Part shown: piece after piece, positions 1,073 to 20,552 of the stretch
Numbering within the stretch: the stretch's first letter is position 1
Layout: each line of letters begins with the position of its first letter
DNA from: Schizochytrium sp. TIO01
Lineage: Eukaryota; Protista; Bigyra: Labyrinthulomycetes
NCBI GenBank assembly: GCA_004764695.1
Contig: SMSO01000031.1
Span: 1 to 37,169 of the forward strand
Direction of reading: 5' to 3'
Length of the DNA stretch: 37,169 nucleotides
Program-made: the position numbers and the translations under genes
Notes under the pieces: generated by a model
What the model saw: only the letters and a program-made list of their open reading frames with translations
Databases searched by the model: none
What the model was told of the DNA's origin: nothing

Positions 1073-2634
1073 CTATAATATGTGCTGGTTTCAAAGCCAT
1101 AAGGCCACCTCCACTATACCTGAGGTGCAGATTGTATTTTGGAGCCCTGTATTGTGACTTTATCTTCGTCATGTGATTAAGTTGTTCATAATACGAGAAA
1201 AAACAGTCTAACATCAGTGATACCGAATAACTCATCATTCTCAAATCTCTTTTGGGTCATTTTTAGAGTCGAGCTATCCTTTGTTGCTATCCTTTGTTAG
1301 ACGCCCCATTAGGCCTTTTTGAATCTTCTAGGATTATTTTCTGTTTTTTTATTCTCAATCTTTGAAACCTCTCTTCATGTAATAGTGAGTAGTATGACTA
1401 CTGAGCTTGATACCTTGTTCTTAGCTTTTATGCAAATAAAAATATAGGATAATCAACAATTAACAATTCATGGTTTTCACCGATCAGACATTCCTGGGAG
1501 ACAGCATGACAAGATGACCATCCAGCATCTGAGTTTCATTATTCTCGACCTCAGCACCAGAAATACTGCGAAATAACCACCTAGTGTCACAGTATATATT
1601 CCCTCGTACTAGATATATTAGACAATCCCTAACCTTGATAGTGATTCGGAGCTGGCAATTTTTAAACTTTCAGTAGTGAAGATCCCGGCCTGGACGAGAG
1701 CACTAGACACAATCGCAATCTATAGAGGATGAATTTTTCTTTCCTGATAGCATGTATATAACTTATTGACCGAGGAAGCCGTTCCAATATTTTCCACTCG
1801 TCATTTCTACACCTATCAATTCAATAAACCTTCCGAACACCATTTCGGTTGGCTGGCCTAGGAGTTTCACTGGTCTTCTGGCTGACCATTTGCTCTGTTC
1901 CAATTTTACGGTTCACAGTGCTTAAATATCATTCAAAGGGACTTCACATTTTTGTTGTTCTTACTTGATGCGTCATAGGTGTTGCCTCTCTGCAATTGAG
2001 TTGCCCCTCATGGAACTGTCCTTGAGGCCAGGCTTATGCATCGCATCCCTTCCTTGCTGAGAGTTTTTAACATTTCACTAAGAACCATGTTCTTTGCCTC
2101 GTGGTAGGCCTTATAATTATATTTTTTTTCAAACAAACAAAATGCAAAACAAGTATTATGATTGCCACCGTGATGTAATCACTAGTTGGAACCACACAAG
2201 CAAACTATGTCTCAACTTCCTCAATGTAGGTATAGTTTTCTTTTCGCTAATCACATCAGTCTCAACCAAACCAATTTGGATCAAAACAGCTAGAAACTAC
2301 ATGTGTGCGTAAAAATCAATGGAATCCAACCAGAAATGTTTCAGAAACAAGGATGCAAGAATTCCATTCCCTTGACAAAATTAGGATGCAGGAAAGATTC
2401 CTGCGTGTCCTTGCACCTGAAAATACACTTTGTAATGAAATATATTGCTCACGATCATTCAACCAAATCAACAGTTTTGTTTTGCAAGTTTATGCAAGAG
2501 TTTGTTTGTCTCAAAAAGCACAATGAGAATAAAGGAGAAATGAACCTTGAAAGAGTAAAATGAGGTTCAACTGTTTTCAACTGACGAACGGAGTTGATAC
2601 TATCTAAATCTACTTTTTGTAATGATCAAACCAC

Positions 2635-2935
2635 ACCAGAAAGCAAGCTTGAGATCAAATTTAATAGACAGATGCGTTCTGGAAAAAAGAAAGAAAAAGA
2701 AAAAAGAGGAACTGCTTGAACAGATGTTCCGTGAGTCTTGATGTATTCATGTTGTAAGCGACGCACTTTCTCTGCCGTTTTAAGAGAAAAATATGCTTCC
2801 CTTACTTGCAGCAGTTGGAAACTGAGTCTGAATCAAGTATATATTACTGAACAAAATAGAAAGCTCGATAGATTGGAAGCTGCAAGTATTGCCTTTATAA
2901 GATCATTGGAACTGTTGGGGCCTTATTATTTTGAA
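2635..2935 (+). pseudogene. Decayed paralogue of the terminal exon of the LRR genes at 15145-15466 / 23489-23810
   Basis: cttgaacagatgttccgtgagtcttgatgtattcatgttgtaagcg aligns with cttgaacaggtagctcgtgagcttcgttgcatccatgccgtgaacg. Peptide EQNRKLDRLEAASIAFIRSLELLGPY matches EQKLEVSRLEAANSVLTASLGLLGTY. Contains an in-frame TGA. Confidence 0.7.
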
Positions 2936-3772
2936 TCGAATATCCTTTTCTTTGCCCTGTTGTCCTTATGCAAAAGTACATTATTCTTTTATTTTGAAGA
3001 TTTCAATCATAATGTACTAGGGAATATTCATCATCCAAACATAGAGCGTGTTGGCATTTTTCATTGAGAAGCATATATAATGATAGCTGAAAATCGGAGG
3101 AGTGAATATGCAAGAGTCATAGACCATCCTTCGTAAGACGTTAGAGTACAATGCATAATCATTAACCAGATAAGCGATAGAATTGATGGCTTTCAAGATG
3201 CAAAGCAAGAGGGTGCCTCAATTCCTCAGATACCACATAGACATCATACTAATGACCATAACTAATCTTACATTAACTGAAGTGGTGACGATGACCTTGG
3301 AGTTCCTTTTCACAAGACTAGATGCTGAAAGGTGATACTGATTAGCGTGAAGTTGACTGTAAAGATGAAGGTAGAAGGCTTGATGAAGGCTATACGAAGG
3401 TTGATTTAAGAGTTAGCGATCTGCTGTCCTGAGGAATGAATACCAGGACAGATGGATTCATGTAGTAATTAGGAAGATTAAGACATTCTTGAATATGGTT
3501 AGAGATAATCGATGAGGTTGGATTATCCAACCTTCTTCACCATCGATCCAAGTTAAACCAAGCTTGGGTGTCGGTGATGTGTATTCACACTTCTAGATCT
3601 TGACTTCAGCAGCCACGTCAGTCTGGCTGCTTATTCTTGTTCTAATGTAAACCTTATTCCTAATGGGTTTTACAAAGGGACACCAAGAACTCTAGCAATG
3701 TCTTGTTCATTTGTTCCTTCGATTGGAGATCTCAGCAATCACAAACTACACAAAATTTGAATTCGCCGAGGA

Positions 3773-4010
3773 AAGTTTCTTAGCTGTAACATTTCTTAGT
3801 CCCCTCAAGCCAAAGCTTGCTGAGAAGCATGCTACATGACTTTTCTAGATCTCTTAAGGCCAACTTGCATAAATTGTTTCTTCTCTTAGAGCCAAACCTT
3901 ATTCAGGAGCTTTTTTACATAACCTTTCTAGACCTCTCAGGGCCAATCTGCCCAACGTTTTTCTTATCTTAGGGCCAAACCTTGCTCAGGTGCTTTTGCA
4001 TAGCATCTGC
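3773..4010. repeat. Degenerate tandem repeat, ~83-bp period, ~2.7 copies
   Basis: tttctagatctcttaaggccaa (3842) recurs as tttctagacctctcagggccaa (3925). tcttagagccaaacctt recurs as tcttagggccaaacctt. Confidence 0.55.
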
Positions 4011-4260
4011 CTTATTACTGAAGGCCTGTCATCTGACAGACCCTGAGAAAGTGGCTCAAAACCCTACTTCCACATGCGTGTCAACCGACAGGCCCTAAGA
4101 GAGCGACCTTGTAAGACTAAAATTAGGTCTTTCTTGTGATTTAAGTTCTCCAATGTCAGCTGACAGGCCTTAGAAGAGTAATTTCTCCTCACAAAATTGA
4201 ACTTGTACTTACGGCTTACCCACCGTCAGACCGAACTTCTGGCCAATTATTAATTAAGCC

Positions 4261-4452
4261 TATTGCAGATTAGCTTAGCGCGCAGAGGTAGTTTAACAAT
4301 GATGATATATATGTTATTGAAATTTCGGATCTTTTTGGATACAGGCAAGATGAATGTATCATGTTGAATCCAGTAGAGTGTTGGACAGAAGATTTAGGTT
4401 AAGTTAAGTTAAGTTAGGTTAGTTTAGCACCTAGCTGTATGTTACGTCAATA
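4261..4452 (-). mobile_element. Solo LTR related to the copia element at 15493-20900, with 5-bp TSD AAGCC
   Basis: Begins tattgcaga and ends tagctgtatgttacgtcaata like the intact LTRs. Contains degenerate TTAGG/TTAAG repeats. Flanked by aagcc at 4256-4260 and 4453-4457. Confidence 0.88.
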
Positions 4453-4991
4453 AAGCCTAAGCAGGGGCTAGCAGTGGGTATGAAGATCAGTTGACACTCA
4501 GTGCAAATGAGGTGTTGTTATTTGCATTATTTGCGTGGTCGAATGTACTTTGGAAAGGATATATGATGCCTTTATAAATATTAGTTTGATTGTGAGATAC
4601 TAGTTAGTTCTATGACTAGGTAGTCCTATGAGATGGTGCTAGTGGAACCTCTGGAGCAAACATTACTGGAAAAGATCTTCTACCGAACAAGTGATAATAG
4701 GACTTGCAAGGAAGGACGCCAGCATGGCTTGTTAGGTAGAGTTAGGATCAAGTTAGTAAAATACCTTTTTATTTCAAGAGCACTAAGTAACATCTGTATC
4801 TTAAGGAAAACCATAGCAACTCATTGAGCCAGCACGTGTGCACGCCACCTTGCAACCCTGTCATGGCCTTGCAGCTTCACATCCAGCAGGTTCGAAACCT
4901 TCTGCGACGACTGGGACTGTGCCACGAGCTTCGCTGAGAGCGTACACGCACGCGCCCGCTGGTTGAAGTCTAGATCTTTCCTTACTGCACG

Positions 4992-7900
4992 ATGTCAGAC
5001 CACCCAGATGTTGTCGATGCCCTTGAGCAGCTTCGGAATGGCGCTACAACATTGGAGTAAGTTAACATGGTAGTCTCGTTCGCTCGGTCGCTCGCTTGCT
5101 TGCTTGCTTGCTTTATTTGCACGGTGTTGCTTTTGTTGTTATTGTTTTGCAAGTTTATGCGATGGCTGGTTTGTTTGTTTGTTTGTTTGATGGATAGGCG
5201 GATGGATGAATGGATAAGTTGTCTGTTTGAGTGAGTATACATCCATCGAACAAAGAGCAAAATGACAACACAACAAAGATAAATGCTGAAAGCCAACCTA
5301 GATCACTCACGTCCATGCATGCATGCGTGCATCTATTGTAATATGTAACGTGTAATGTATTGCTTGCCATCATTCAATCAAATCGACAGTCTTGAAGGCA
5401 ACAAAATCGGCTCAGAGGGCGCCAAGGCAGTGGCTGCGGCGCTGAAAGAGAACCGGTCGCTGACATCACTATCGTAAGTTGTCTACGCGACACCGCAGCT
5501 CGTGGACTTGTTTGTACATGATGTTTGGTTTGTTGTTTGGTGGGTGAGTCGGTGTTGTTTTGCATCTTTATGCAATCGCTTGTTTGTTTGATGGATGTAT
5601 AAGTGGCCTGTTTGACTTGAGTATGCATCCATCGAACAAAGAGCAAAATGACAACACAACATAGACGAAATCCTGAAAGTCAACCTAGATCACTCACGTC
5701 TATGCATGCATGCGTGCATCTGTTGTAACATGTAACGTGTAATGTATTGCTTGCCATCATTCAATCAAATCGACAGTCTTAGAGGCAACCAGATCGGCTC
5801 ACAGGGCGCCAACGCAGTGGCTGCGGCGCTGAAAGAGAACCGGTCGCTGACATCACTTGAGTAAGTTGTCTACGCAAGACCGCAGCTCGTGGACTTGTTT
5901 GTACATGATGCTTGGTTTGTTGTTTGGTGGGTGGGTCGGTGTTGTTTTGCAAGTTTATGCAATCGCTTGTTTGTTTGATGGATGGATGAGTTGTATGTTT
6001 GAGTGAGTATACATCCATCCAACAAAGAGCAAAATGACAACACAACAAAGATAAATGCTGAAAGCCAACCTAGATCACTCACGTCCATGCATGCATGCGT
6101 GCATCTATTGTAATATGTAATATGTAACGTGTAATGTATTGCTTGCCATCATTCAATCAAATCGACAGTCTTTCGGGCAACAATATAGGCAATGAGGGCG
6201 GCAAGGCAGTGGCTGCGGCGCTGAAAGAGAACCGGTCGCTGACATCACTTGAGTAAGTTGTCTACGCAACACCGCAGCTCGTGGACTTGTTTGGACATGA
6301 TGCTTGGTTTGTTGTTTGGTGGGTGGGTCGTTGTTGTTTTGCAAGTTTATGCAATCGCTTGTTTGTTTGATGGATGGATGAGTTGTCTGTTTGAGTGAGT
6401 ATACATCCATCCAACAAAGAGCAAAATGACAACACAACAAAGATAAATGCTGAAAGCCAACCTAGATCACTCACGTCCATGCATCTAATGTAATGTGTCA
6501 TGTGTAATGTATTGCTTGCCATCATTCAATCAAATCGACAGTCTTTCAGTAAACGGAATCGGCTTAGAGGGCGGCAACGCAGTGGCTGCGGCGCTGAAAG
6601 AGAACCGGTCGCTGACATCACTTGAGTAAGTTGTCTACGCAACACCGCAGCTCGTGGACTTGTTTGTACATGATGCTTGGTTTGTTGTTTGGTGGGTGGG
6701 TCGGTGTTGTTTTGCAAGTTTATGCAATCGCTTGTTTGTTTGATGGATGGATGAGTTGTCTGTTTGAGTGAGTATACATCCATCAAACAAAGAGCAAAAT
6801 GACAACACAACAAAGATAAATGCTGAAAGCCAACCTAGATCACTCACGTCCATGCATGCATGCGTGCATCTATTGTAATATGTAATATGTAACGTGTAAT
6901 GTATTGCTTGCCATCATTCAATCAAATCGACAGTCTTCGATACAACGATATCGGCGACGAGGGCGCCAAGGCAGTGATAGCGGCGCTGAAAGAGAACCGG
7001 TCGCTGACATCACTCAAGTAAGTTGTCTACGCAACACCGCCGCTCGTGGACTTGTTTGTACATGATGCTTGGTTTGTTGTTTGGTGGGTGGGTCGGTGTT
7101 GTTTTGCAAGTTTATGCAATCGCTTGTTTGTTTGTTCGTTAGGTTGGTTGGTTGTTCGATGGATGGATGGATGAGTTGTCTGTTTGAGTGAGTACACATC
7201 CATCAAACAAAGAGCAAAATGACAACACAATAAAGATAAATGCTGAAAGCCAACCTAGATCACTCACGTCCATGCATGCATGCGTGCATCTATTGTAATA
7301 TGTAACGTGTAATGTATTGCTTGTCATCATTCAATCAAATCGACAGTCTTAGAAACAACCGCATCGGCTCAGAGGGCGCCAAGGCAGTGGCTGCGGCGCT
7401 GAAAGAGAACCAGTCGCTGACATCACTTGAGTAAGTTGTCTACGCAACACCGCAGCTCGTGGACTTGTTTGGACATGATGCTTGGTTTGTTGTTTGGTGG
7501 GTGGGTCGGTGTTGTTTTGCAAGTTTATGCAATCGCTTGTTTGTTTGATGGATGGATGAGTTGTCTGTTTGAGTGAGTATACATCCATCAAACAAAGAGC
7601 AAAATGACAACACAACAAAGATAAATGCTGAAAGCCAACCTAGATCACTCACGTCCATGCATGCATGCGTGCATCTATTGTAATATGTAACGTGTAATGT
7701 ATTGCTTGCCATCATTCAATCAAAACGACAGTCTTTATAACAACGATATCGGCTCAGAGGGCGCCAAGGCAGTGGTCGCGGCGCTGAAAGAGAACCGGTC
7801 GCTGACATCACTTGAGTAAGTTGTCTACGCAACACCGCAGCTCGTGGACTTGTTTGGACATGATGCTTGGTTTGTTGTTTGGTGAGTGGGTCGGTGTTGT

Positions 7901-10900
7901 TTTGCAAGTTTATGCAATCGCTTGTTTGTTTGATGGATGGATGAGTTGTCTGTTTGAGTGAGTATACATCCATCGAACAAAGAGCAAAATGACAACACAA
8001 CAAAGATAAATGCTGAAAGCCAACCTAGATCACTCACGTCCATGCATCTAATGTAATGTGTCATGTGTAATGTATTGCTTGCCATCATTCAATCAAATCG
8101 ACAGTCTTGGATACAACAGTATCGGCTCAGAGGGTGCTAAGGCAGTGGCTGCGGCGCTGAAAGAGAACCGGTCGCTAACATCACTATCGTAAGTTGTCTA
8201 CGCAACACCGCAGCTCGTGGACTTGTTTGTACATGATGCTTGGTTTGTTGTTTGGTGGGTGGGTCGTTGTTGTTTTGCAAGTTTATGCAATCGCTTGTAT
8301 GTTTGATGGATGGATAAGTTGTCTGTTTGAGTGAGTATACATCCATCCAACAAAGAGCAAAATGACAACACAACAAAGATAAATGCTGAAAGCCAACCTA
8401 GATCACTCACGTCCATGCATGCATGCGTGCATCTATTGTAATATGTAACGTGTAATGTATTGCTTGCCATCATTCAATCAAATCGACAGTCTTCGATACA
8501 ACGATATCGGCGACGAGGGCGCCAAGGCAGTGGTCGCGGCGCTGAAAGAGAACCGGTCGCTGACATCACTTGAGTAAGTTGTCTACGCAACACCGCAGCT
8601 CGTGGACTTGTTTGTACATGATGCTTGGTTTGTTGTTTGGTGGGTGGGTCGGTAATGTTTTGCAAGTTTATGCAATCGCTTGTTTGTTTGATGGATGGAT
8701 GAGTTGTCTGTTTGAGTGAGTATACATCCATCAAACAAAGAGCAAAATGACAACACAACAAAGATAAATGCTGAAAGCCAACCTAGATCACTCACGTCCA
8801 TGCATGCATGCGTGCATCTATTGTAATATGTAACGTGTAATGTATTGCTTGCCATCATTCAATCAAATCGACAGTCTTCGATTCAACTATATCAGCTCAG
8901 AGGGCGCCAAGGCAGTGGCTGCGGCGCTGAAAGAGAACCAGTCGCTGACATCACTTGAGTAAGTTGTCTACGCAACACCGCAGCTCGTGGACTTGTTTGT
9001 ACATGATGCTTGGTTTGTTGTTTGGTGGGTGGGTCGGTGTTGTTTTGCAAGTTTATGCAATCGCTTGTTTGTTTGATGGATGGATGAGTTGTCTGTTTGA
9101 GTGAGTATACATCCATCCAACAAAGAGCAAAATGACAACACAACAAAGATAAATGCTGAAAGCCAACCTAGATCACTCACGTCCATGCATGCATGCGTGC
9201 ATCTATTGTAATATGTAATATGTAACGTGTAATGTATTGCTTGCCATCATTCAATCAAATCGACAGTCTTGAAGGCAACAAAATCGGCTCAGAGGGCGCC
9301 AAGGCAGTGGCTGCGGCGCTAAAAGAGAACCGGTTGCTGACATCACTATAGTAAGTTGTCTACGCAACACCGCAGCTCGTGGACTTGTTTGGACATGATG
9401 CTTGGTTTGTTGTTTGGTGGGTGGGTCGGTAATGTTTTGCAAGTTTATGCAATCGCTTGTTTGTTTGATGGATGGATGAGTTGTCTGTTTGAGTGAGTAT
9501 ACATCCATCAAACAAAGAGCAAAATGACAACACAACAAAGATAAATGCTGAAAGCCAACCTAGATCACTCACGTCCATGCATCTAATGTAATGTGTCATG
9601 TGTAATGTATTGCTTGCCATCATTTAATCAAATCGACAGTCTTAAATACAACGATATCGGCGACGAGGGCGCCAACGCAGTGGCTGCGGCGCTGAAAGAG
9701 AACCGGTCGCTGACATCACTTGAGTAAGTTGTCTACGCAACACCGCAGCTCGTGGACTTGTTTGTACATGATGCTTGGTTTGTTGTTTGGTGGGTGGGTC
9801 GGTGTTGTTTTGCAAGTTTATGCAATCGCTTGTTTGTTTGATGGATGGATGAGTTGTCTGTTTGAGTGAGTATACATCCATCCAACAAAGAGCAAAATGA
9901 CAACACAACAAAGATAAATGCTGAAAGCCAACCTAGATCACTCACGTCCATGCATGCATGCGTGCATCTATTGTAATATGTAACGTGTAATGTATTGCTT
10001 GCCATCATTCAATCAAATCGACAGTCTTTCAGTGAACGGAATCGGCTCAGAGGGCGCCAAGGCAGTGGCTGCGGCGCTGGATGAAAATCATGTTCTTCAG
10101 GAAATATAGTGAGTTTGTCCAAATTAAAGAGATTTAATCGAATGCTTGAGTTATAAGAAATGAAGCTTTGAGATGGTTTAAACTAACAAATTAGGGTTGT
10201 ATACCTTGGCAGTTTTGATTATTCTGATATCTCTCAAGACGTGATAGATCATATTGGTGACCGCTTAAAGCTAGCTAAAGATATAGTTGACGAATTCACA
10301 AAGTCTGCATTGAATGGTTTTTCAAAAGATGAAAAAGTGCGATGGGGCCGGGCGAAACTGATGGTAGTTGGGAAGGGGGGCGCTGGCAAGACATCAACTA
10401 TTCGCACGTTACTCGGTCAAGCATTCGTAGCGGAGCATGACTCGACCATTGGTGTAGAACTCAAGGTGATTCGCACGAAGGACTGGAAAGAAGACCCCAT
10501 GGGCATTCATTCTGCTGACCTCCATGAGGCTCTCGCAAAACATCAATTATTTCAAGGGCAAGACAATCTCGCTGCAAGATCTTCGCAGGCTCTTCTCTCG
10601 AACGATGTTCCTGTAAAGAAGCGCCGGGTTTCAGAGTCAAGCATTTCTGCACTTCGATCAGATGATATTCCTAAGCTAAAGATTGATTCTAAGGAAGTGA
10701 TAAGATCTTACAGGGCAGATGTGAAGGTTCAACTGGAAGAGAGAGGTCACAAAATTGTTGAAACTGATATCAGTTTTTCTATTTGGGATTACGGTGGGCA
10801 GGAGGTTTTCTACGCTTTGCATCACCTTTTCCTAACTAATTACGGGGTGTATGTGGTCGTTTTCGATATGCGAGAAGTGATTGGAAAAGATAATTTCCAG

Positions 10901-12790
10901 GACTGTTCTGACTATGCGTTAATGGAGGACAGCGAGACGGCACTAAACACGATTCGATTCTGGCTAGACTCGATACGCTTACATGCGAATGGAGCCAAGG
11001 TTATTCTTGTGGGAACATATCTCGACGCCCTGCAGGATACTAAGGAAGATCTAAATCTCGTTGACACTGAGTTGGAAGTGCTTCTAGCTCAGGCCAACGG
11101 CCTCCATCATGTGAGAAACAAAACAGAGAATCTGAATTTTTACCCTCTGGACAACACCGAACGAAGGGAGCCATTTCGTTGTGAGCTTCTTCGTGAGATT
11201 CTCATGACTACAGCTGCCAAGGAAGAATATGTAAAAGAGAAGGTACCACTGCGGTGGTCTCTCTGTTTCGATCGTATGTTCAGAACTAATAAAGACTACA
11301 TGGAGCTCGATGCTGTGTATGAGCTTGCAAAGGGATCCTGTGGCATTTCAAAAGATGACGCTACAAAGATGCTAGAGTTCATGCACGAGCTGGGGGTAAT
11401 TGTGCATCTCACCTCTACGCCTGCTTTAGCAAACTATGTGATCCTGCAACCTCAATGGCTGCTGGGCAACTTGTCACGAGTAATTTGTGATCCAATGCAT
11501 ATGAAGGCGCATGTGAAAAAAATGAAAGAAGCAGTTACAGAGGTTGAGATACCAACAGATTGGTATGCTGACTTAGAGACTTGGAAGAAACGCGGGGTTG
11601 CAAGTCAATTATTTCTGTCAATGTTATGGGGTCGACCTTTTTTAGTGAAGTACTTTTCTGAACTCATGACAGAAATGCTTCTGGCTAGCAGAAGCCCATG
11701 GATAGGAGACTTGGACGCAGAGGGAGCTTTGTTAATTCCCAGTTTACTAGAGAATATCTCTGAGGATGGGCTCGATGATTTCTTTTCGGAATTTGAAGGC
11801 GCCGCTTTAGTGTATATCGAGTTTGACTTTTTCCCCAAAGGAGTATTTCAACGCTTCGTTGCGAGTATGGTGTCAAATTTCCCTGCAGGGCTCGTTGAGG
11901 TTCAGCAGGTGTACGCAAATGCGGCAAGCATCATATTTGATGGCACTTCTGTCCTCCTGGTTCGGGATGATACTCGACGTCGTATTATCATGTATTTAGA
12001 AAATGATGAAGAAGACGAAAGCAGCGATTTACAGAGACCAATAACAGACATTGTACAACTACTGCACACTCAACTGCAATCAATAGATGAAGCTTTCATG
12101 AAACAGAAATTGAATCCAAGGTTGTTTTTGAGCTGTGACGGTACGACAAATGATGAAAGTTGTGCCTCTATTAGTGTTCTGGCAAAGCGACAGCGCGGTA
12201 AGGTCTTGTCTGTTGGGCTCAAGAAGAAAAAATTGAGGCTGTCATCCTTTCGGTTGTTTTTTGCCAACAGAGATGAGGCCGAAGGGTTGGAATCGAAGGT
12301 AACAGCACGACGAGAGAAGAAGTATGACGTCTTTTTGTCACACGCTTGGGGCGAAGATAAGAAAGTGCATAGGCTTGTATGCCGTGTAAGTGATGAGTTG
12401 CAGAACAATCATGGTATATCATGTTGGCTCGATCGGAACGAGGTGCAGCACGGCGAGATTACTCGTATAATGACTCAGGGTATCGATGATTCCAAAGTGG
12501 GCGTTGTCTTTGTTACACGGGAATACATGGAGAAGGTGAACTCTGACCCTGCGAGGGAAGATTACTGTCGTTATGAGTTTGAGTACCTGGTAAAGAGAAA
12601 GTCCCGAGTTCGCATGATTCCAGTTGTACTTGAGCAAGCTATGACTGGTACAAGCAAGTGGGAAGGCGTTTTTGGCGGTTCGTGGGGAATTAATCCTCTT
12701 TATGTTAACATGACGAGTGGTGGATCTCCAAGTGAGGTTAAGGAGCTCCACGATATGGTTCGTCACGTTCTTAGTGAAATTGAAAAATAA
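4992..12790 (+). CDS. ROCO-family LRR-Roc-COR-TIR protein, 15 exons, predicted 1244 aa
   Basis: Manual GT-AG model, all introns phase 2. Exon 1: 4992-5056 (MSDHPDVVDALEQLRNGATTL). LRR exons: 5390-5473, 5777-5860, 6169-6252, 6542-6625, 6934-7017, 7347-7430, 7732-7815, 8105-8188, 8490-8573, 8875-8958, 9267-9350, 9640-9723, 10025-10108. Last exon: 10213-12790. Total 3735 nt with no stops. Roc motifs GKGGAGKTS, STIG, WDYGGQEVFY, LVGTYLD. COR motif LEFMHELGVIVH..ILQPQWL. TIR motifs YDVFLSH..ISCWLD..SKVGVVFVTREY..YCRYE. Confidence 0.92.
5057..10108 (+). repeat. Tandem array of 13 intron+exon units (373-413 bp), each with one 84-nt, 28-aa ribonuclease-inhibitor-type LRR exon
   Basis: Acceptor caaatcgacag|T CTT and donor |gtaagttgtctacgc recur in the units. 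Consensus xLxxNxIGxEGAKAVAAALKENRSLTSL. Spacings: 387, 392, 373, 392, 413, 385, 373, 385, 385, 392, 373, 385. Confidence 0.97.
12320..12790 (+). other. C-terminal TIR (TIR_2-like) domain of the ROCO protein
   Basis: KYDVFLSHAW, GISCWLD, IDDSKVGVVFVTREYM, YCRYEF with Glu codon at 12575-12577, MIPVVLE. Confidence 0.88.
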
Positions 12791-13530
12791 CGATTATCCT
12801 AAGTTTGAGCAATTGATGTTTCATATATGTTAGTGTTTGCTCTTGCACAACATTGTTTCTCATTCGAAACATTCTACTGCTATTGTGTGAGGCTTTGCTC
12901 CAATTGAACACGGGGTTTGTTTTCTTTTTAAAATTTTATCAAGTAACTTCATTCGATTTTTGTTTTTATTCTTATAATAGGTCTAATTGTCATTTTGAGA
13001 GCAACGATACCCTTTTTAGTGGTAAATCTACTACGAGAAACAGTGTAAATACTTTATATCTTAACCTATAGTACTATGCCGAGCTAGTGAAAACTAGGCC
13101 AATGGATGTTGGCACTACAAACCTGAACCCATTTATCAACTCACACATATACCAGGGCCACTCCTTTCTTATTTCGTGTCTACGTCTCTATACTCATATT
13201 ATCCACGCTTCTCTTCATCAGACCCACTGATGAAGGCTAAATTTCAACTATGTCGTGTATATTATCAAACTCGATTTTCAAAATGTAATTGAACTGAAAG
13301 ACCTGCCAACCCTTTTGACTGTTTGACCAAGGAAGAGAGAGACAGTGCTGAAGGCGATTCGTCACGAGACACTTGTATATGATTACGGTGTGGTCTTGTC
13401 GGGTTATACCTCGAAGTGATGCGCAATTCAAAGGAAGGTTTTATGTTCAATAGGACAAAGTTGAGGAGTGGCTTGCTTCAGGTTAAAGGTCTAGCCTTTG
13501 TAAGTAACTATTGAGTATTCATGTGTCTGT

Positions 13531-15491
13531 AAAATGGTGAACATGTGGGGCACAAGGAGAGGTTTTGCCTTGATCTTTTTAAAATTAAAAACGCATGGTG
13601 AGAAATGTTTGAGCAAGGTGGCTGATGTTCAAACTGGAGTGAAATCACTTTTAATTTTTCATTGTCAATTGTGGACCAGCAGGCTGGGGAACAACAATAT
13701 TGACAACAAAGGTTGCGCAGCGTTGGCGGATGCACTCAAGACAAACCATACGTTGACCATGCTAGAGTGAGTTGACTGTTATACCCTTTGCATGCATGCA
13801 ACAAGAGGGTTAATCATATGATATACTGACAGGAAGCATTGGAATGATTACGATTCTGAGAACAAGTTGTTGTCTTTGGCCGAGTACGGATGCGCAGCCT
13901 TACATCTAACAAAATCAACGACGAAGGATGGGTGGGCTTGGCGGAAGTACTGAAGGAGAACAAGACGGTGGAAACGTTGCTGTGAGTTAGACTAGCAATT
14001 TATCAGGCTATTGCCGGTACGAGAAGTTACCCATTGTAGCTTCTTTTGCAGAGAGATAACTGACTTTGGTATGAATTGACGCATTTTTCTTTTTCAACAG
14101 GATGAATGGAAGCATTGTTGGCGATAAAGGTTGTGCGACGTTTGCTGAGGTACTCCAGAAAAACCATTCGCTGAAAAACCTAGGGTGAGTTGAGCAATCT
14201 ATGTGTCAGACCATTCTGAGAATACACGGGCCTTTGTTCAAATTCTTGGCTGTTTCGAGTGAATATTGAAAGTTTAGAAGCATAGAGTTGCACTTAGAGT
14301 GGCTCCGTACTGATTGTGCAGGAAGACTATTTGTTAAGATAACTGACTTTGATGTATAAATGGAAACAAATGAAATGATTTGCTATTTCGTTTTTGACTA
14401 ATAGTCTGGGTACAAAGTACTTTGATATCACAGGCTTTCGCGCTTTTATGGATGTACTCAAGGAAAACCAGGTTTTGAAAGCGCTATTGTGAGTTGAATG
14501 ATTTTGTTTTTTGGGGGGGGTCTCTGACTGATGCAGAAATGATCAGAGGATCGAAAGAAGTTGTGTAATTACGTGTTTAATTCAAGCAAGTAGAAGGGAG
14601 CGATGCTTGCTTTTTGAAACCATGAGGAAGCCATTCGTGACGCTGTCAGAGGACTAACATTGGGTTGGAACGGGTTATGCCACGCAACAACGTTTTCATT
14701 TTATTGCTAACTGCAATCTAACAGCTTGAGCGCAATGAGCATTGACGACAAGTTTGGTGTGGCTTTGGGTGAGGTGTTGAAGAAGAACAAGGTTCTGACA
14801 GCATTATCGTGAGTTAAACAAGTTATTTTTGGGCACAAAAGTGGTAAGGGTCAAAATCATTGGTGTACACTACTGCGGTTGATAAATATGGAACACTCGG
14901 AAGATATAAGAGAAAATATGGCAATGTCCTTGAAAATTGCAGTTCGATAGCAGAGATCTAACTCTATTCATTATTTGTAAATCGTGTTATAGTATCAATG
15001 GGAAGGACAGGAGCAGCACAAAAGGTCGTGTGGCGGTGATTGAAGGACTTCAGGCGAACCGCAGTATCACAATCTTTGAGTACGTTGAAGAAAAACATGA
15101 AGAATGGGAATTGTTGGCTAACACAATGATTTGTTGATTGATAGACACCCCTGGCGAGGTGATAAAAGCATCCAAAGTGAGCTTGACCTGAATAATCAGA
15201 TTTATGCTGAACAGGAAAGGAAGAAAAATCTTGAACAGGTAGCTCGTGAGCTTCGTTGCATCCATGCCGTGAACGGGACCCTAGCTATGCCGCTTGCAGG
15301 GAAACGTGGCAAACAAATTGTGCAGAGTAGTTTAACTAGCAACACGACCAATGTAGGAGGTAAACAGCAATGCTTTGATGAACAGAAGCTGGAAGTTAGT
15401 CGTTTAGAAGCTGCAAACAGTGTCCTAACGGCTTCATTGGGATTGCTGGGCACGTATCTTTGCTAACCAGATAAATCATTTTCCAATCTAG
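13531..15491 (+). repeat. Segmental duplication copy 1 (~1.96 kb), paired with 21865-23835
   Basis: Colinear, highly similar sequence from aaaatggtgaacatgtggggcac to cattttccaatctag. The ORF translations are near-identical in both copies. Confidence 0.95.
13683..15466 (+). pseudogene. Multi-exon RI-type LRR gene, copy A (5' end not identifiable; partial gene or pseudogene)
   Basis: Phase-2 exons: 13683-13766 (LGNNNIDNKGCAALADALKTNHTLTML), 13898-13981, 14101-14184, 14405-14488, 14725-14808 (all 84 nt), 14993-15079 (87 nt), terminal 15145-15466. AG acceptors and GTGAGT/GTACGT donors. Introns are unique. Confidence 0.8.
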
Positions 15492-15701: not shown

Positions 15702-18700
15702 TCACGCGTCAGCACCTGAAGCATCAAGTAAGCGACTAGCGTGTTTCCAATGAGATGGTGCTGCAAGTGGTTTGGTAAGTAAATCAGCTATATTTTCTGT
15801 GCCTTTAACATGATGTACCTTGAGTAATTGGTTTTGTCTTCGATGAATCAGTACTGCTAGTTGTACTGCGAGATAACCATTTGTACCATTAACTTCTTCC
15901 TTTTTGATTGTGTTTACTAATGCTTGACAATCTATATATACCTGTATTTCATTGATGTAAATGTTCATGTCTGCTAAAAGTTGTCGAATGGATTCTGCTC
16001 TGAGAACTCCTGCAACTGCAGCAATTAGTTCAGCTTCGTGAGTATTTCTTGCAACTGTAGACTGTTTGGTTGTTTTCCATACAACAGCACTATCATTTAT
16101 CATAACAACATATCCTGTAACACTACGACGAAGTTTGTCATGTGCCTTGCTGAAAGAAGCATCTGTATAGACGTTCAAAACAAGTTGTGCCTCTGAATCC
16201 ACGCCTTTGAGTGTTAGAACTTTGTCCTTTGTGGCCTTGACATAACGGAATGCATGTTTAAGAGCTTGCATATGTTCCGCTCCATTCTTTTGACCATGAC
16301 ATGCAAGTTGGTGTAAAGTGTATGCCATATCCGGTCGAGTTTTTAGTAAATACATTAGAGTGCCGACAAGTGGACGATAGTGTTCATTCACAGAGTCGTC
16401 AGGATGATCACTTAACTCTTTAAGGATGGATGGAGTTTTAGCTCCATTGCAGTTTTCCATATTACATCGCCTAAGGGCTTTTTCACAATACTCGCGTTGG
16501 CTGATGGTACAGACCTTTCGTGACTTGTCATAGACATGTGTATCACTAAGATAATGGCATTGTTTTTCACGATTAACTTTGACGCCGACATTTTGTTCGA
16601 GTTCTTTGACAATCGCTTTGAGTGCTTGGGGCGTGCCAAAAATTCTCATGTCATCAACATGGATAGTCATTAGAAGATCTTTGCCAATAAAGAGTGATGC
16701 GTCCGTTATAGATCGTGTTAAGCCATAATTTTCTAATATAGCCGTCAAATGATCCATCCACCTACGGGGGGCACTTTTGAGTCCATATAGACTTTTACGC
16801 AGACGATAACAATAACCTTCTGCTAAGTCAAGACCTTCAATACCTTTGATGTAGAGGAATTCGTCATCTGGAATTTGTGCTTCTAGAAAAGCGGCTGTTA
16901 CATCAACGGTGATAGCATCATAGCCTCTCGTTAAAGCAATAATTGTTGCAACACGAATGCTTTCAACATTAACTGTTGGTGAGTATATATCATAAACATG
17001 TTCAATGGCCTCATTGTAGCCTTGTACTACAACCCGTGCTTTTAACAGATTGACCGGTGGTGCCTTCTTTGTAAAGACCCATCTAGTTCCCATTACAGTC
17101 TGTCCCTGTGGTAAAGTGTGTAAGGGTACAGTTTCCAGAACACCAGCGGACTGCAGATTGTGATGTTCAGTATTCATAGCAGCGATCCATAGTTGCTGAT
17201 ATGCCTGAGGCAGTTTCCGCATTTCTTTATAAGTGTTTGGAACTACAATGTCGTCATATGGACATGGTTTTGGGACCGGTTTAGGTAATTGTTTATTATC
17301 TGTGTTGGTTTTAATAAGAAAAGCAAAATATTCCTGTTCCCTCGGATATATCGTGGGAATGATTAGTTCATGTAAGTTCTCTTCTTTTGATAGAGAATTA
17401 ATATCCGAGAAATCTAACTCTGTATTCGTCATATTACGTTTTCGTTTCAGACGATTGGTATAGTATCGGTATTTATTTGCAGCGCCTTTGGCACTGGGAC
17501 CAACATTTAGTGGTACATGAGGTTTGGGAGTCCTTTTGGATCTCCGATGACTATCGCGTGCATGGACTGAACTATGTTCTAGTTCCATGTCTTCACGAGC
17601 ATGTTCACTTTTGGATTCACGGTCATCATTATTTACCTCAGAATGACTAACGTGTTCACTATTGGATTCACGGTCATTGTGATTTAGTTCCGGATGACTA
17701 GCGTGTTCACTACTGGATTCACGGTCATTGTGATTTAGTTCCGGATGACTAGCGTGTTCACTACTGGATTCACGGTCATTATGATTTGGTTCCGGATGAC
17801 TAGCGTGTTCACTACTGGATTCACGGTCATTATGATTTGGTTCCGGATGACTAGCGTGTTCACTACTGGATTCACGGTCATTATGATTTGGTTCCGGATG
17901 ACTAGCGTGTTCACTACTGGATTCACGGTCATTATGATTGGGTTCCGGATGACTAGCGTGTTCACTACTGGATTCACGGTCATTATTATATTCTGGGGTA
18001 TTAGGAGTGAGGAAAGATTTAGTATTATTAGCTGTGGAGGATAAAGCAGGTAGATCCTGATACATTTCTCCATCAATTAGTTTATTTGATTCTTCACGTG
18101 TCCAATGAGTAATTAGATCAGGTGTCAGAGCGGTTTCTATTGACATTGCACGCTGACGAGTTTGTTCAGTCAATGCTTGATCGAAAATCTTGACTTCACG
18201 CGTTTGAAGGATGTTGGACTTGTCTTTAGGTAAGACATGTACAGTTCCATGAGTGTAACTATCAGCATATCCAAGGAAAATGCCTAGTTCACCCCTATCT
18301 CCCAACTTTTGCGGAATGGGAAACTTCTTGAACACACATGGTGCTCCAAAAATGTGGAAGTAGCTGTAGTCTGGTGCTTTGCCAAAATGTCGTTCGTACG
18401 GAGATTTCCGATTGCGACTGGAGGCTGTGCGATTCTTGACATGTACAGCATGAGATAAAGCATAGGGCCAATATTTGGCTCCGAGTAATGCAGTTTTTAG
18501 ATTGGAGCGAAGACCATTCATTAGTACTCGATTGATGCCTTCAGCAGGATTTGTAGCATGAGAGTGTGGTGCAGATAGTTTATGTTCCCACCGCATGGTG
18601 TGAAGTGATCTTGCAAACTCTCCGCCTGTAAAATATTTAGCTCCGTCTGTGCGAATGATGATGCGCGAGGTGTTTTTACCTTGGAGCCATGCTTGAGCAA

Positions 18701-19060
18701 AGGTACGAAGGGTCGTGGACACTTGATCAGTGGATTGTATAGGATAAACATATGTAAAGTCTGAGTAAAGATCTCTGTAGACTATGGCATATTTGAACTT
18801 GTTGGGGATGCCTAGAACGTGGAATGGTCCCATCACATCAGCTGTAACAGCTTGTCGAGGAGACTTAGCATATGGTGTGTGAGGTCCTTTTGTCACTGGA
18901 ATACGTTCAAAGTTGGCAACTTTACAATCCATGCATAAGAAGTCGATTTGTGATGCAGGAACTCCTATGGAGGATGCTATGCGTGGAATGGAAGCGTGAC
19001 CTAATTTAAGATGAGCTTCTAGCCAATCTATTCCTTTATAACTGAGTTTTTTGTGCTTTC
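15702..19060 (-). CDS. pol: copia Pol: integrase, repeat linker, reverse transcriptase, RNase H
   Basis: HLKLGH..CMDC zinc motif. DDE triad ADVMGP / RTDGA / PAEGINR. RT motifs KARVVVQG, VDVTAAFL, KSLYGLKSAPRRW, IHVDD. RNase H motifs YTDASF, HEAE, YIDCQ, NIADLLTK. Joined to gag-PR across a frame change near 19040-19060. Confidence 0.95.
17597..17990 (-). repeat. 51-bp coding tandem repeat (DRESSSEHASHPEPNHN) x ~7.5 in the IN-RT linker
   Basis: ggattcacggtcat recurs every 51 bp (e.g. 17664, 17715). Confidence 0.95.
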
Positions 19061-20552
19061 CGTAGTTGCAGAGCGTTAACTTTGGGTGATTTAACAGGGA
19101 TAAGCATTGGGATGTCAGATTGCTGACCGAGTGTAATAACTTCTCCATGTGGAGTGGTCATACGATCGCTATCTTGTGAGAAGAAAAATGAGAATCCTTG
19201 CTGAGTCATAATAGACGTCGACAGTAATGTGTGAGCAAGGGAAGGTGCGTAGTAGACTGTAAGTGTTAAAGGAACAATTCTACCCGACGTTGATCTTACT
19301 CGTGCCTCCACGGTACCTTTTCCTAAAATCGGAACTGAGGATCCTTGAGCTGCATCCATTGATAGTGGATTAATGTTCTCATAGTTTGAAAGTAATGCAA
19401 GATTTGGTGTGACATGCAAATTGCATCCAGAATCTAGTAGGAATCCTTCTGAGGTTGTCTCTGCTGACTTCGGTTCTGATTTTAGATGATTGATTGTCAG
19501 AAGGTTGACACTGAAATTGGCATGAAAAGGTCCTTGATCAAAAGGAGCGTTGTGTAACGCGAGACCTTTGTACGGTGGTGTTGAATTATGACGCTGACGC
19601 TTGTTGTTCGACTTTTGTTGTCGCGATGATCTACGTGGACAAACAGAGGGTCTGTGTCCAACTTGGTTACAGATAGGACAAATTGCTGTCAAGAATTTGC
19701 AGTTTGCCTCAGCATGATTTGAATAACCACAGTGTGAGCATTTATTCCTTTGAGGAAAGGGTTGTTGTGCTCCCCCGGAATTGTTGTTTTGAGATGTAGG
19801 TCGTTTTTGACGCTTGAACTTGTTCCGGGAAGGGTGAAAGGAGTTTGCTTGTAGATGTGTGGGTTCAGGGTTCCCAGCAGAATAGACACTTTTGCCTTTA
19901 AGTGTGCATTGTTGTGCAACTTCCCGTTCCGTGTTTCGTAACTCTTGAAACAATTCTTTACTATACTCTTTGAGTTTAATTGCTTTGCCATAGATCGCAG
20001 TTGTTTGTGGACCCATGTAACGAATACGTGGTAAAAGGTTAAGGATAAACATGTAATCATGTAACATCATGCCAGTAGCTAGCACGTCTAACTGAGTGTT
20101 GTGCAGTTTCAGAAACCATGTCATGACTTCGTCTTCTGACATGTTCTCAAAAGAATTGTTAAGGTATTGCTGAAAACATTGTACGAGTGCTGAAACCTTG
20201 TTGATGTTGATTTCACCAGGCTGTTTCTTAAATGCGATTTGAAGTTGTGCCCAGGCAGCACGTCCTTCACCGCCACGGTGAGATTTACCATATTGTTGTA
20301 GTCGTTCGTCAAAATCTGTGCCAGCTTGATTGCTGAGTAAGGAAGGCGTAAAGTGCACTGTCAAGTAGACGTTGTCTCTTAGGGTCAGTGCAAGCTTCAA
20401 TCTACTGCTAGCTTTTCTTTAAGCTTTCGTAGTTCTTCACGTATGTCTTCATCAGAGTCGGGACTCTGTTTCTTGATGTTCGCCGCTTGGTCCGCAGCTT
20501 CTTGTTTCTTCTTGAGCTTATTGCTCTTCTTGCTGCCTCCAGGAGTCATCAT
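19036..20552 (-). CDS. gag: copia Gag-protease (apparent frameshift near 20415)
   Basis: Two CCHC knuckles (CSHCGYSNHAEANC, CPICNQVGHRPSVC) and protease motif FLLDSGCNLH. Likely ATG at 20552 (MMTPGGSKK..EELRKLKE) is out of frame with the 454-aa ORF at an A-run. Confidence 0.85.

Follow-up and report, generated by a model that had tools for sequence, protein, structure and literature searches.

An expressed LRR-Roc-COR-TIR gene of Schizochytrium sp. TIO01 built from near-identical exon-intron units that differ mainly at five codons

Introduction

Among described systems, the closest in design to the gene reported here are the LRR-ROCO genes of the brown algae Ectocarpus and Saccharina, which have been proposed as candidate immune receptors (PMC3341825, PMC11378527). 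In these genes, an N-terminal array of leucine-rich repeats (LRRs) is followed by Roc-COR, each LRR is encoded by its own exon between phase-2 introns, exons are shuffled within and between loci, and four x positions of each LxxLxLxxN repeat, on the concave face, are under positive selection. Here we describe a gene of comparable plan in Schizochytrium sp. TIO01, which is a stramenopile, as the brown algae are. It is located in a stretch of 37,169 nucleotides (assembly GCA_004764695.1, contig SMSO01000031.1, positions 1 to 37,169), hereafter called the window, in which positions 4992-12790 of the plus strand constitute one gene, its 13 LRR exons of 84 nt being preceded by a start exon and followed by one exon for Roc, COR and TIR. 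An earlier note, made from the sequence alone, had drawn attention to the variable codons of the LRR exons and to the near-identity of the introns between them.

Three of the four selected brown-algal positions are the equivalents of those named x0, x1 and x2 below and, judging from sequence and from the model of a homologue, diversifying selection at concave-face x positions appears to operate here as well. The brown-algal repeat, however, is a type I LRR of 24 residues in a 72-nt exon and not of the ribonuclease inhibitor (RI) type, whereas the unit here has 28 residues and 84 nt. The C-terminal TIR domain found here is absent from the brown-algal proteins, and neither genome-wide near-identity of introns nor placement beside ribosomal DNA (rDNA) is described there, as far as the available text of those sources goes. 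In short, the present gene works like the brown-algal family but belongs to another repeat family.

Other systems share parts of the same logic. In the HNWD genes of Podospora (het-d/het-e), which carry WD40 repeats, and in the highly conserved internal repeats of other fungal NLRs, concerted evolution operates within and between family members, four surface positions of each repeat are under diversifying selection, and a large pool of repeats is proposed to supply mutations that are then reshuffled and selected (PMC1805685, PMC13449251). The fungal WD40, ANK or TPR repeats differ in that they lie within a single exon, their units being intron-free, and are attached to a central STAND module, NACHT or NB-ARC, where the present gene has Roc-COR; moreover, the fungal process of repeat-induced point mutation (RIP) has no known counterpart here. 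In PRDM9, tandem coding repeats of 84 bp are kept near-identical by unequal exchange, and a few ligand-contact codons are hypervariable under positive selection; these repeats, however, are intron-free, encode DNA-binding zinc fingers and are restricted to one gene instead of forming a dispersed family. The logic of the PRDM9 minisatellite is nevertheless alike (PMC8925151). Tetrahymena possesses tens of thousands of fixed-length, one-repeat LRR exons between phase-2 introns, which were spread by ectopic recombination and are common to genes on different chromosomes; its unit has 30 residues, no Roc-COR-TIR effector is described, and the focus there is on gene birth and not on variability of a few codons (PMC6564038). 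What is new in the present case is the RI-type cassette of 84 nt, a TIR domain as the presumed output, an intron in every unit that serves as an internal neutral control, a homogeneity that is equal within and between arrays, and a location in apparent rDNA-bearing chromosome ends.

Gene structure and domain composition

The string of LRR exons, each of exactly 84 nt, underlies a tandem repeat of 385 bp x 12.6 at 5205-10079, and all 13 exons are preceded by CAG and followed by GTAAGT (Table 1). The reading frames of the gene model were checked exon by exon, and the exons and the final exon were searched separately. All introns of the gene are in phase 2, and those between the LRR exons and before the first one measure 289-333 nt; because of this phase the x0 codon is always interrupted, its first two bases closing an exon and a T that completes it opening the following one. 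The donor GTAAGT of exon 1 lies at 5057, and sequence resembling exon 1 was found joined directly to a first LRR exon in transcript contigs, as loose contig ends. At the other end of the array, the tail of LRR exon 13 shows homology to the stretch that closes the LRR region in the Hondaea protein P0003, and the reading frame is continuous across the last intron.

Table 1. Features of the LRR-Roc-COR-TIR gene and of its surroundings in the window. Cassettes are given in the order x0, x1x2, x3, x4.
Feature	Position	Strand	Evidence or remark
Exon 1: start codon, 21 codons + GA (first two bases of first x0 codon)	4992-5056	+	
Intron 1, 333 nt	5057-5389	+	Most diverged array intron
LRR exon 1, cassette D-EG-K-S	5390-5473	+	
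LRR exon 2, cassette S-RG-Q-S	5777-5860	+	
LRR exon 3, cassette D-SG-N-N	6169-6252	+	
LRR exon 4, cassette D-SV-G-L	6542-6625	+	
LRR exon 5, cassette D-RY-D-D	6934-7017	+	
LRR exon 6, cassette N-RN-R-S	7347-7430	+	
LRR exon 7, cassette D-YN-D-S	7732-7815	+	
LRR exon 8, cassette D-GY-S-S	8105-8188	+	
LRR exon 9, cassette S-RY-D-D	8490-8573	+	
LRR exon 10, cassette D-RF-Y-S	8875-8958	+	I-G pair has Ser instead of Gly
LRR exon 11, cassette D-EG-K-S	9267-9350	+	
LRR exon 12, cassette Y-KY-D-D	9640-9723	+	
LRR exon 13, cassette D-SV-G-S	10025-10108	+	Diverged C-terminal half running into linker
Twelve internal array introns, 289-329 nt, phase 2	5474-10024	+	GTAAGT...CAG; alternating with LRR exons 2-12
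Last intron, 104 nt	10109-10212	+	GT..AG; between LRR array and effector exon
Final exon: linker, Roc GTPase, COR, TIR, stop codon	10213-12790	+	Open frame, Pfam, PDB relatives
Roc GTPase domain	10352-11050	+	PF08477, 5.9e-18, 65.7 bits (cut-off 27)
COR-A domain	11255-11512	+	PF16095, 1.5e-11, 44.8 bits (cut-off 35.3)
TIR domain	12320-12676	+	PF13676, 8.1e-13, 49.4 bits (cut-off 28); PF01582, 3e-06, 27.6 bits (cut-off 21.3)
Glutaredoxin gene, intron-less, 144 aa	638-1072	+	PF00462; 4 kb upstream of the LRR-Roc-COR-TIR gene
Two almost identical 111-codon open frames	15131-15466, 23475-23810		Duplicated spacer segment flanking the Ty1/copia region
Ty1/copia retrotransposon	15702-20400	-	Open gag-like (454 aa) and pol (1148 aa; integrase, RVT_2) frames
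18S-5.8S-28S rDNA unit, complete	25421-30941		
Tandem repeat, 411 bp x 3.9	31932-33563		After 28S
Tandem repeat, 371 bp x 6.5	34716-37124		After the 411-bp repeat

In the final exon Roc is directly followed by COR, the arrangement that defines the ROCO family, to which the predicted protein is assigned on this basis. Roc contains the P-loop GKGGAGKT (about 10370-10396) and the DxxGQ motif of switch II, and GTP binding and hydrolysis are predicted from these motifs. In the TIR domain, the stretch C-R-Y-E-F may be the counterpart of the catalytic-glutamate motif of enzymatic TIR domains. The nearest PDB relatives of this exon are the Roco protein of M. barkeri, Roc-COR of LRRK2 and the Roco protein of C. 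tepidum. Neither NACHT nor NB-ARC was found by Pfam, the only related signal being a sub-threshold AAA_22 match on the Roc P-loop; thus, the gene is not of the NLR/STAND class. Among named organisms, the closest relatives of the Roc-COR-TIR exon come from the thraustochytrid Hondaea, whose LRR-Roc-COR-TIR proteins share 44-45% identity with it and have 3-6 LRRs of the same type and the same domain order.

Expression and splicing

Contigs of four public runs, originating from four studies and presumed to be RNA, were aligned to positions 6900-12850. The joint from 10108 to 10213, with its GT..AG intron removed, was present in one contig of each of the four runs, the short side of the alignment measuring 32-41 bases, and in many other contigs the end of an LRR exon was joined to the start of another LRR exon. 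Since these exon-exon contigs carry variable codons other than those of the window, they represent spliced transcripts of paralogues. The depth of coverage was consistent with this: in run X2 the bins holding only intron had a depth of 0-66 and those holding exon 1,700-12,500, i.e., the former were at least about 50-fold lower. Taken together, the junctions and the contrast in depth indicate that the runs are not DNA-like, since DNA would not yield such a pattern. The LRR-Roc-COR-TIR gene is expressed and spliced. It is to be noted that many joints also gave the appearance of exon skipping; these are ambiguous, because the scaffold part is identical in all exons, and most of the contigs fit in several places.

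Variation within the array of the window

When the exons are written in the register x0-L-x1-x2-N-x3-I-G-x4, the 13 cassettes read exactly as the earlier note had listed them; the interleaved CTT (Leu) and AAC (Asn) codons are identical in 13/13 exons, and x3 uses the same eight codons that were named. The central statement of the note, namely that these exon sites vary more than the introns, also held upon measurement. Nucleotide diversity was 0.51 at the 15 bases of the five variable codons, 0.06 at the other exon sites and 0.0195 in introns 3-13, and the difference between variable sites and intron columns was pronounced (Mann-Whitney P = 1e-28).

Two parts of the description had to be narrowed, however. 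The near-identity of the introns applies to introns 3-13, which are 96-100% identical in pairwise comparison, but intron 2 shares 91-94% and intron 1 only 82-87% with the others. Similarly, the five codons carry the main diversity but do not confine it entirely, as codons 11, 12, 15 and 22 vary a little; nor is the variation confined to non-synonymous sites, as the last Leu codon has a variable third base, which changes in step with x0.

The dispersed cassette family

At least 395 matches to the unit, at 93-100% identity, were found in the 64-Mb genome, where they form at least 20 arrays spread over 15 or more contigs. From these, 155 distinct units were analysed, which were taken from 30 loci of 2.1-3.4 kb (L001-L030) comprising 20 array stretches. 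The diversity resides in the same five codons throughout, with 29, 21 and 19 different codons at x1, x2 and x3, respectively, and 96 combinations of x1-x4. A non-redundant set of 118 units in 16 arrays was obtained by dropping four recent duplicate arrays; here diversity at the variable bases reached 0.545, as against 0.042 for the remaining exon sites and 0.049 for 100 introns. In the same set, intron divergence was 4.4% within arrays and 5.0% between arrays, showing that a unit resembles the units of other arrays about as closely as those of its own.

Many arrays are situated 4-6 kb upstream of an 18S copy and in the same orientation. Starts resembling exon 1 were found at at least 40 loci, and the junction into the Roc-COR-TIR exon at only about 12. 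An example is the array of contig C5 (L021, G000:C5:1795503-1798884), in which exon 1 and 11 LRR exons are followed by the spacer upstream of the rDNA; no effector exon was found within 1.1 kb downstream, although the exons are open and the splice sites intact. A near-identical duplicate of the whole gene of the window exists at G000:C13:4003265-4011107 (its array being L002, L003, L006 and L007), with an LRR array that is 99.7% identical to that of the window and has the same 12 cassettes in the same order. The Roc-COR-TIR part of this C13 copy contains an in-frame TGA and a frame change, visible as two separate matches, and the copy therefore looks broken.

Two features of the family differ from the behaviour of x1-x3. 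First, x4 (codon 8, e.g., 5412-5414) is nearly dimorphic in the 155 units, with TCA (Ser) in 80 and GAC (Asp) in 60. These codons differ at all three bases, the intermediates GCC, GCA, TTA and TAC are rare, and there is no synonymous variation within either class. Second, the last Leu codon of the LRR exon (e.g., 5471-5473 and 7015-7017) has a synonymous third base with a diversity of 0.67, and the state of this base is closely tied to that of the next two, which belong to x0, the combinations CTA-TC, CTT-GA and CTC-AA accounting for 42, 39 and 34 of the 155 units, respectively. The synonymous bases beside x1 and x3 are nearly invariant, unlike this Leu wobble base. The wobble base and the two x0 bases occupy positions -3 to -1 of the 5' splice site.

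As a separate observation, codon 15 of each LRR exon (e.g., 5433-5435), which falls on the helix, is a sixth, moderately variable position; it encodes Ala in 104, Gly in 43, Val in 6 and Ile in 2 of the 155 units, and Ala, Val or Ile in the window.

Location of the variable residues in the repeat

The repeat has a period of 28 residues, with LxxLxLxxNxIGxxG followed by a helix, which is the pattern of RI-type LRRs. A single LRR exon matches RI-like LRR proteins, RI itself and NLRX1, and the Hondaea homologue P0005 matches RI at 1e-35; the Pfam LRR_6 match of one exon was below the cut-off (19.5 vs 23.4 bits). The same type of 28-residue repeat forms the LRR domains of RI, NOD and NLRP proteins (PDB 1Z7X, 1A4Y, 1DFJ, 5IRM and the NLRP3 entries), although NOD and NLRP proteins have a NACHT domain, which the present gene lacks. 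In the motif LxxLxLxxNxL, x0, x1, x2 and x3 are positions 5, 7, 8 and 10, respectively, and x4 is position 13.

Alignment with human RI placed its residues W261, W263, W318, K320, W375, Y434, D435 and Y437 exactly on the x0-x3 positions. We take these eight residues to be the contact hot spots for RNases and angiogenin, following the literature on the RI-RNase and RI-angiogenin complexes; the ligand-contact positions of RI would then coincide with x0-x3 here. The comparison has its bounds, as RI is also built of exon-sized repeats, but these alternate between 28 and 29 residues and are encoded two to an exon, and RI does not form a hypervariable family.

In the AlphaFold model of P0005, with an LRR pLDDT of 87-95, the strand comprises positions 3-5, and a helix of 13 residues per repeat begins at position 12-13. 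By these limits, x0 closes the strand, x1-x3 are in the loop that follows, and x4 is at the N-terminus of the helix. The placement of x0-x3 at the strand end and loop, on the concave rim, is thus supported by both homology and the homologue model, whereas x4 may be a helix cap instead of a contact residue. Positions 2 and 3 of the LRR, which vary in many LRR receptors, are invariant here.

Selection on the variable codons

The Nei-Gojobori method gave pS/pN values of 0.51/0.60 for the variable codons and was rejected as a test, because codons with multiple hits are saturated; third-base diversity was used instead, i.e., the frequency of third-base difference among codons that share the first two bases and the amino acid. 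By this measure the third base differed in 6.5% of the pairs at variable codons and in 3.1% at scaffold codons (0.065 vs 0.031), while amino-acid heterozygosity at x1-x3 reached 0.86-0.89 in the 118 units. At x3, Asp, Asn and Tyr are always encoded by GAT, AAT and TAT, and x2 is mostly NNC. Such low third-base diversity indicates that the hypervariability resides in the amino acids and not in the DNA as such, in agreement with the earlier statement that the changes are non-synonymous. Stop codons were absent from the variable codons of the 118 units, as against an expectation, on the assumption of free combination of the three codon positions, of about 20 at x1-x3 and about 35 when x4 is included. 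The description in the note of these residues as rich in Tyr, Arg, Asp, Asn and Ser likewise agreed with their composition, Ser, Asp, Asn, Gly, Tyr and Arg making up 71% at x0-x3 and hydrophobic residues 8%.

These results bear directly on whether the five codons could simply be unconstrained surface positions that drift neutrally. Their location at the surface, as judged by homology, would suit such relaxed constraint. Nonetheless, the neutral sites of the same family, in introns and at synonymous positions, have a diversity of 0.03-0.05 as compared to 0.55 at the variable bases, and drift cannot exceed the neutral rate; homogenisation, moreover, would erase neutral differences here as it has done in the neighbouring sequence. 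Hydrophobic residues and stops are also avoided. Relaxed constraint as the sole cause is therefore highly improbable.

Recent duplicates and the question of a mutator

Recently duplicated arrays (the window and C13; C5 and two C30 copies; C7 and C23) have retained both the identity and the order of their cassettes. Over 5.3 kb, the window and C13 are distinguished by 16 base differences and two 7-nt indels, all of which fall outside the 195 variable bases; three further duplicate comparisons yielded 14 substitutions, one of them in a variable base. In all the duplicates, 1/30 substitutions thus fell in a variable base, where 1.06 would be expected at a uniform rate, and the probability of one or fewer would be 5e-4 if the variable sites were 11x faster and 2e-7 if they were 24x faster. 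The absence of an excess leaves both an ongoing codon-targeted mutator and a steady, very high substitution rate unsupported. The single change in a variable patch was a two-base switch from ATA to CAA at an exon end, which includes a synonymous base and turns one common haplotype of the family into another.

Programmed or targeted diversification, in germ line or soma, was considered in this light, whether by a mutator or by directed copying from effector-less donor arrays in the manner of VLR, VSG or the pseudo-V segments of chicken Ig. Several features would accord with it: many arrays possess a start exon yet lack a downstream Roc-COR-TIR part and are possible donors, many adjoin rDNA in what appears to be the published chromosome-end layout (see below), the variable patches are sharply bounded, and the one recent patch switch, between two common haplotypes, carried its synonymous base along. 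However, substitutions in the duplicates matched the uniform expectation, duplicate arrays retain identical cassettes, and the lack of stops together with near-background synonymous variation points to selection acting on ordinary mutations; in addition, no associated enzyme was seen in the window, where the sole reverse transcriptase is that of Ty1/copia. We consider this explanation quite improbable. Two specific versions were rejected. A diversity-generating retroelement, which would have a reverse transcriptase and a template repeat beside the variable repeat and would alter template adenines only, does not agree with Ty1/copia pol being the only reverse transcriptase in the window, with variable codons that differ at all base types, or with the lack of excess change in duplicates; VLR-like somatic assembly, in which flanking cassettes are copied into an incomplete germ-line gene, does not agree with a germ-line gene that is complete and open.

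Exchange between units and arrays

Several observations are indicative of exchange. In the comparison of the window with C13, one and the same variant distinguishes the copies at two separate units; this was seen twice (AA/GT and the 7-nt indel) and is a signature of conversion within an array; in most of the differences between these two copies, one of the states is the family consensus. Association among variable codons is strong for neighbours (x1-x2, z = 11) and decays over about 20 nt, and none was seen between x0 and x1, which are close together in the protein but on either side of an intron in the gene. Where identical cassettes occur in different arrays, their flanking introns are about half as diverged as those of random pairs, indicating that cassettes also move as exon-intron blocks.

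The flanks of the arrays present a different picture. Between paralogues, the Roc-COR-TIR exon has 55-97% amino-acid identity, the exon-1 region 82-100% identity (at least 40 loci) and the junction into Roc 73-100% (about 12 loci), whereas array units of the same genes (e.g., C35 and C32) are 94-97% identical, the variable codons included. As the flanks are far more diverged than the units, homogenisation is specific to the arrays, and genes that are otherwise old must have exchanged their cassettes or had them homogenised.

A recent burst could in principle account for the likeness of the units. In this scenario, one unit was amplified to many loci about 5% of neutral divergence ago and was then subject to episodic positive selection on point mutations, without continuing homogenisation. 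The star-like intron divergence, similar within and between arrays, would follow naturally from it, as would a synonymous diversity near background in the variable codons, with x2 mostly NNC and Asp, Asn and Tyr at x3 always NAT. It fits less well with gene flanks that are 6-27% diverged in DNA and Roc-COR-TIR sequences that are down to 55% identical in amino acids, since arrays would then have been replaced or exchanged between old genes, which is itself exchange between loci. Conversion-type events are also visible between recent duplicates, the variable codons of those duplicates show no excess change, and the haplotypes at x4 and x0 are set apart by changes at three adjacent bases, intermediates being few. 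A burst alone is, on balance, unlikely, although we regard it as the most serious of the alternatives.

The rDNA setting and other features of the window

In Aurantiochytrium limacinum, a preprint describes chromosome ends in which repeats termed LORE-TEARS are arranged around the rDNA, with Group 0 (about 9 x about 385 bp) upstream of 18S, Group 1 (about 4 x 406 bp) after 28S, and then Group 2 (about 6 x 366 bp); they were viewed as spacers without similarity to known sequences and with a possible role in chromosome-end maintenance (10.1101/2023.06.15.545109). The window agrees with this layout in size and order, as its 385 bp x 12.6 array lies upstream of 18S-5.8S-28S, which is followed by the repeats of 411 bp x 3.9 and 371 bp x 6.5, but it differs from the published Group 0 in that the units are coding, spliced exons with their introns. 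On this evidence of layout and unit size, Group 0 of LORE-TEARS is probably this LRR exon-intron array. Our literature search found LORE-TEARS mentioned in no paper besides that preprint.

The published description raises the converse possibility, that the array is a non-coding satellite that merely resembles exons, or else an artefact of assembly, since repeats of the same size and position were taken for non-coding spacers. Against this, all 155/155 units have intact AG/GT boundaries and open frames, spliced junctions are present in contigs of four runs, among them the unique joint that leads to the Roc exon, and the Hondaea homologues have the same LRR-Roc-COR-TIR order. The chance that the exons are spurious is practically negligible.

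The remaining features of the window are listed in Table 1. The Rfam search of the window returned rRNA only. Inside the Ty1/copia pol frame there is a 51-nt tandem repeat x 7.6 (17598-17986), which encodes a 17-residue repeat rich in Ser, His and Glu. A frame related to the two 111-codon frames is present after the C5 array (L021 2546-2890), and these frames are probably conserved spacer upstream of rDNA and not a gene.

Discussion

In our view, these results are likely to reflect two processes acting together, namely concerted evolution in a dispersed family of cassettes and diversifying selection on the face by which the LRRs would bind. Both within arrays and from one array to another, most of these lying adjacent to rDNA, the introns and the scaffold would be kept about 95-100% alike by unequal crossing-over and by gene conversion in short tracts, and selection for differing amino acids at positions 5, 7, 8 and 10 would keep nearly every cassette distinct; position 13 also varies, but there binding-face selection is less clearly the cause. 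Ordinary mutation would supply the variants, the recent duplicate arrays giving no sign of a local mutator, and exchange of small patches as well as whole exon-intron blocks would re-assort them. In the resulting protein, the variable LRR face would bind ligand, the Roc-COR GTPase would act as a switch and the TIR domain as output, as in immune-type receptors.

The proposals of the earlier note can be placed accordingly. It had located the variable residues on the ligand-binding strand and loop, which the RI homology and the homologue model favour for x0-x3, but perhaps not for x4. It had also suggested diversifying selection or targeted exchange; the non-synonymous changes without stops speak for selection, and exchange of cassettes is evident, but a targeted mutator finds no backing in the duplicates.

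A number of points weigh against this explanation or limit its reach. The runs are only presumed to be RNA, and their contigs cannot tie cassettes to one particular paralogue. The analysis covered 155 of at least 395 units. The variable positions were placed by RI homology and by a model of the homologue P0005, not of this protein, and ligand binding, the switch role and TIR output are probable functions derived from the domains. Low synonymous diversity in the variable codons would also be compatible with a recent amplification burst followed by positive selection. Lastly, selection on the binding face does not explain three features: the variable Leu wobble base linked to x0 (0.67), the x4 Ser/Asp and x0 haplotypes that differ at three adjacent bases, and x4 itself, which is probably a helix cap.

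A more speculative extension, which we regard as rather doubtful, is that the effector-less, rDNA-adjacent arrays form a silent library, from which ectopic conversion between chromosome ends copies cassettes into the few effector-linked genes. If this were true, strains and even clonal lineages would differ in their receptor repertoire, in a VSG- or VLR-like manner. The organism concerned is a free-living protist, which we understand to be known to carry mirusviruses.

To our knowledge, almost no immunity has been described in the heterotrophic stramenopile group to which this organism belongs. The cassette family would provide this group with a large, expressed repertoire of LRR receptors that have an immune-type architecture and bear a classic mark of diversifying selection. 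If Group 0 is this array, published non-coding spacers of chromosome ends are to be reinterpreted as coding cassettes, linking the homogeneity of chromosome ends to the evolution of receptors. Each cassette also brings a neutral intron of its own, which allows the effects of concerted evolution to be set against those of selection codon by codon. Together with the brown-algal ROCO genes, these findings raise the question of whether ROCO receptors with one LRR per exon may be ancestral to the stramenopiles.

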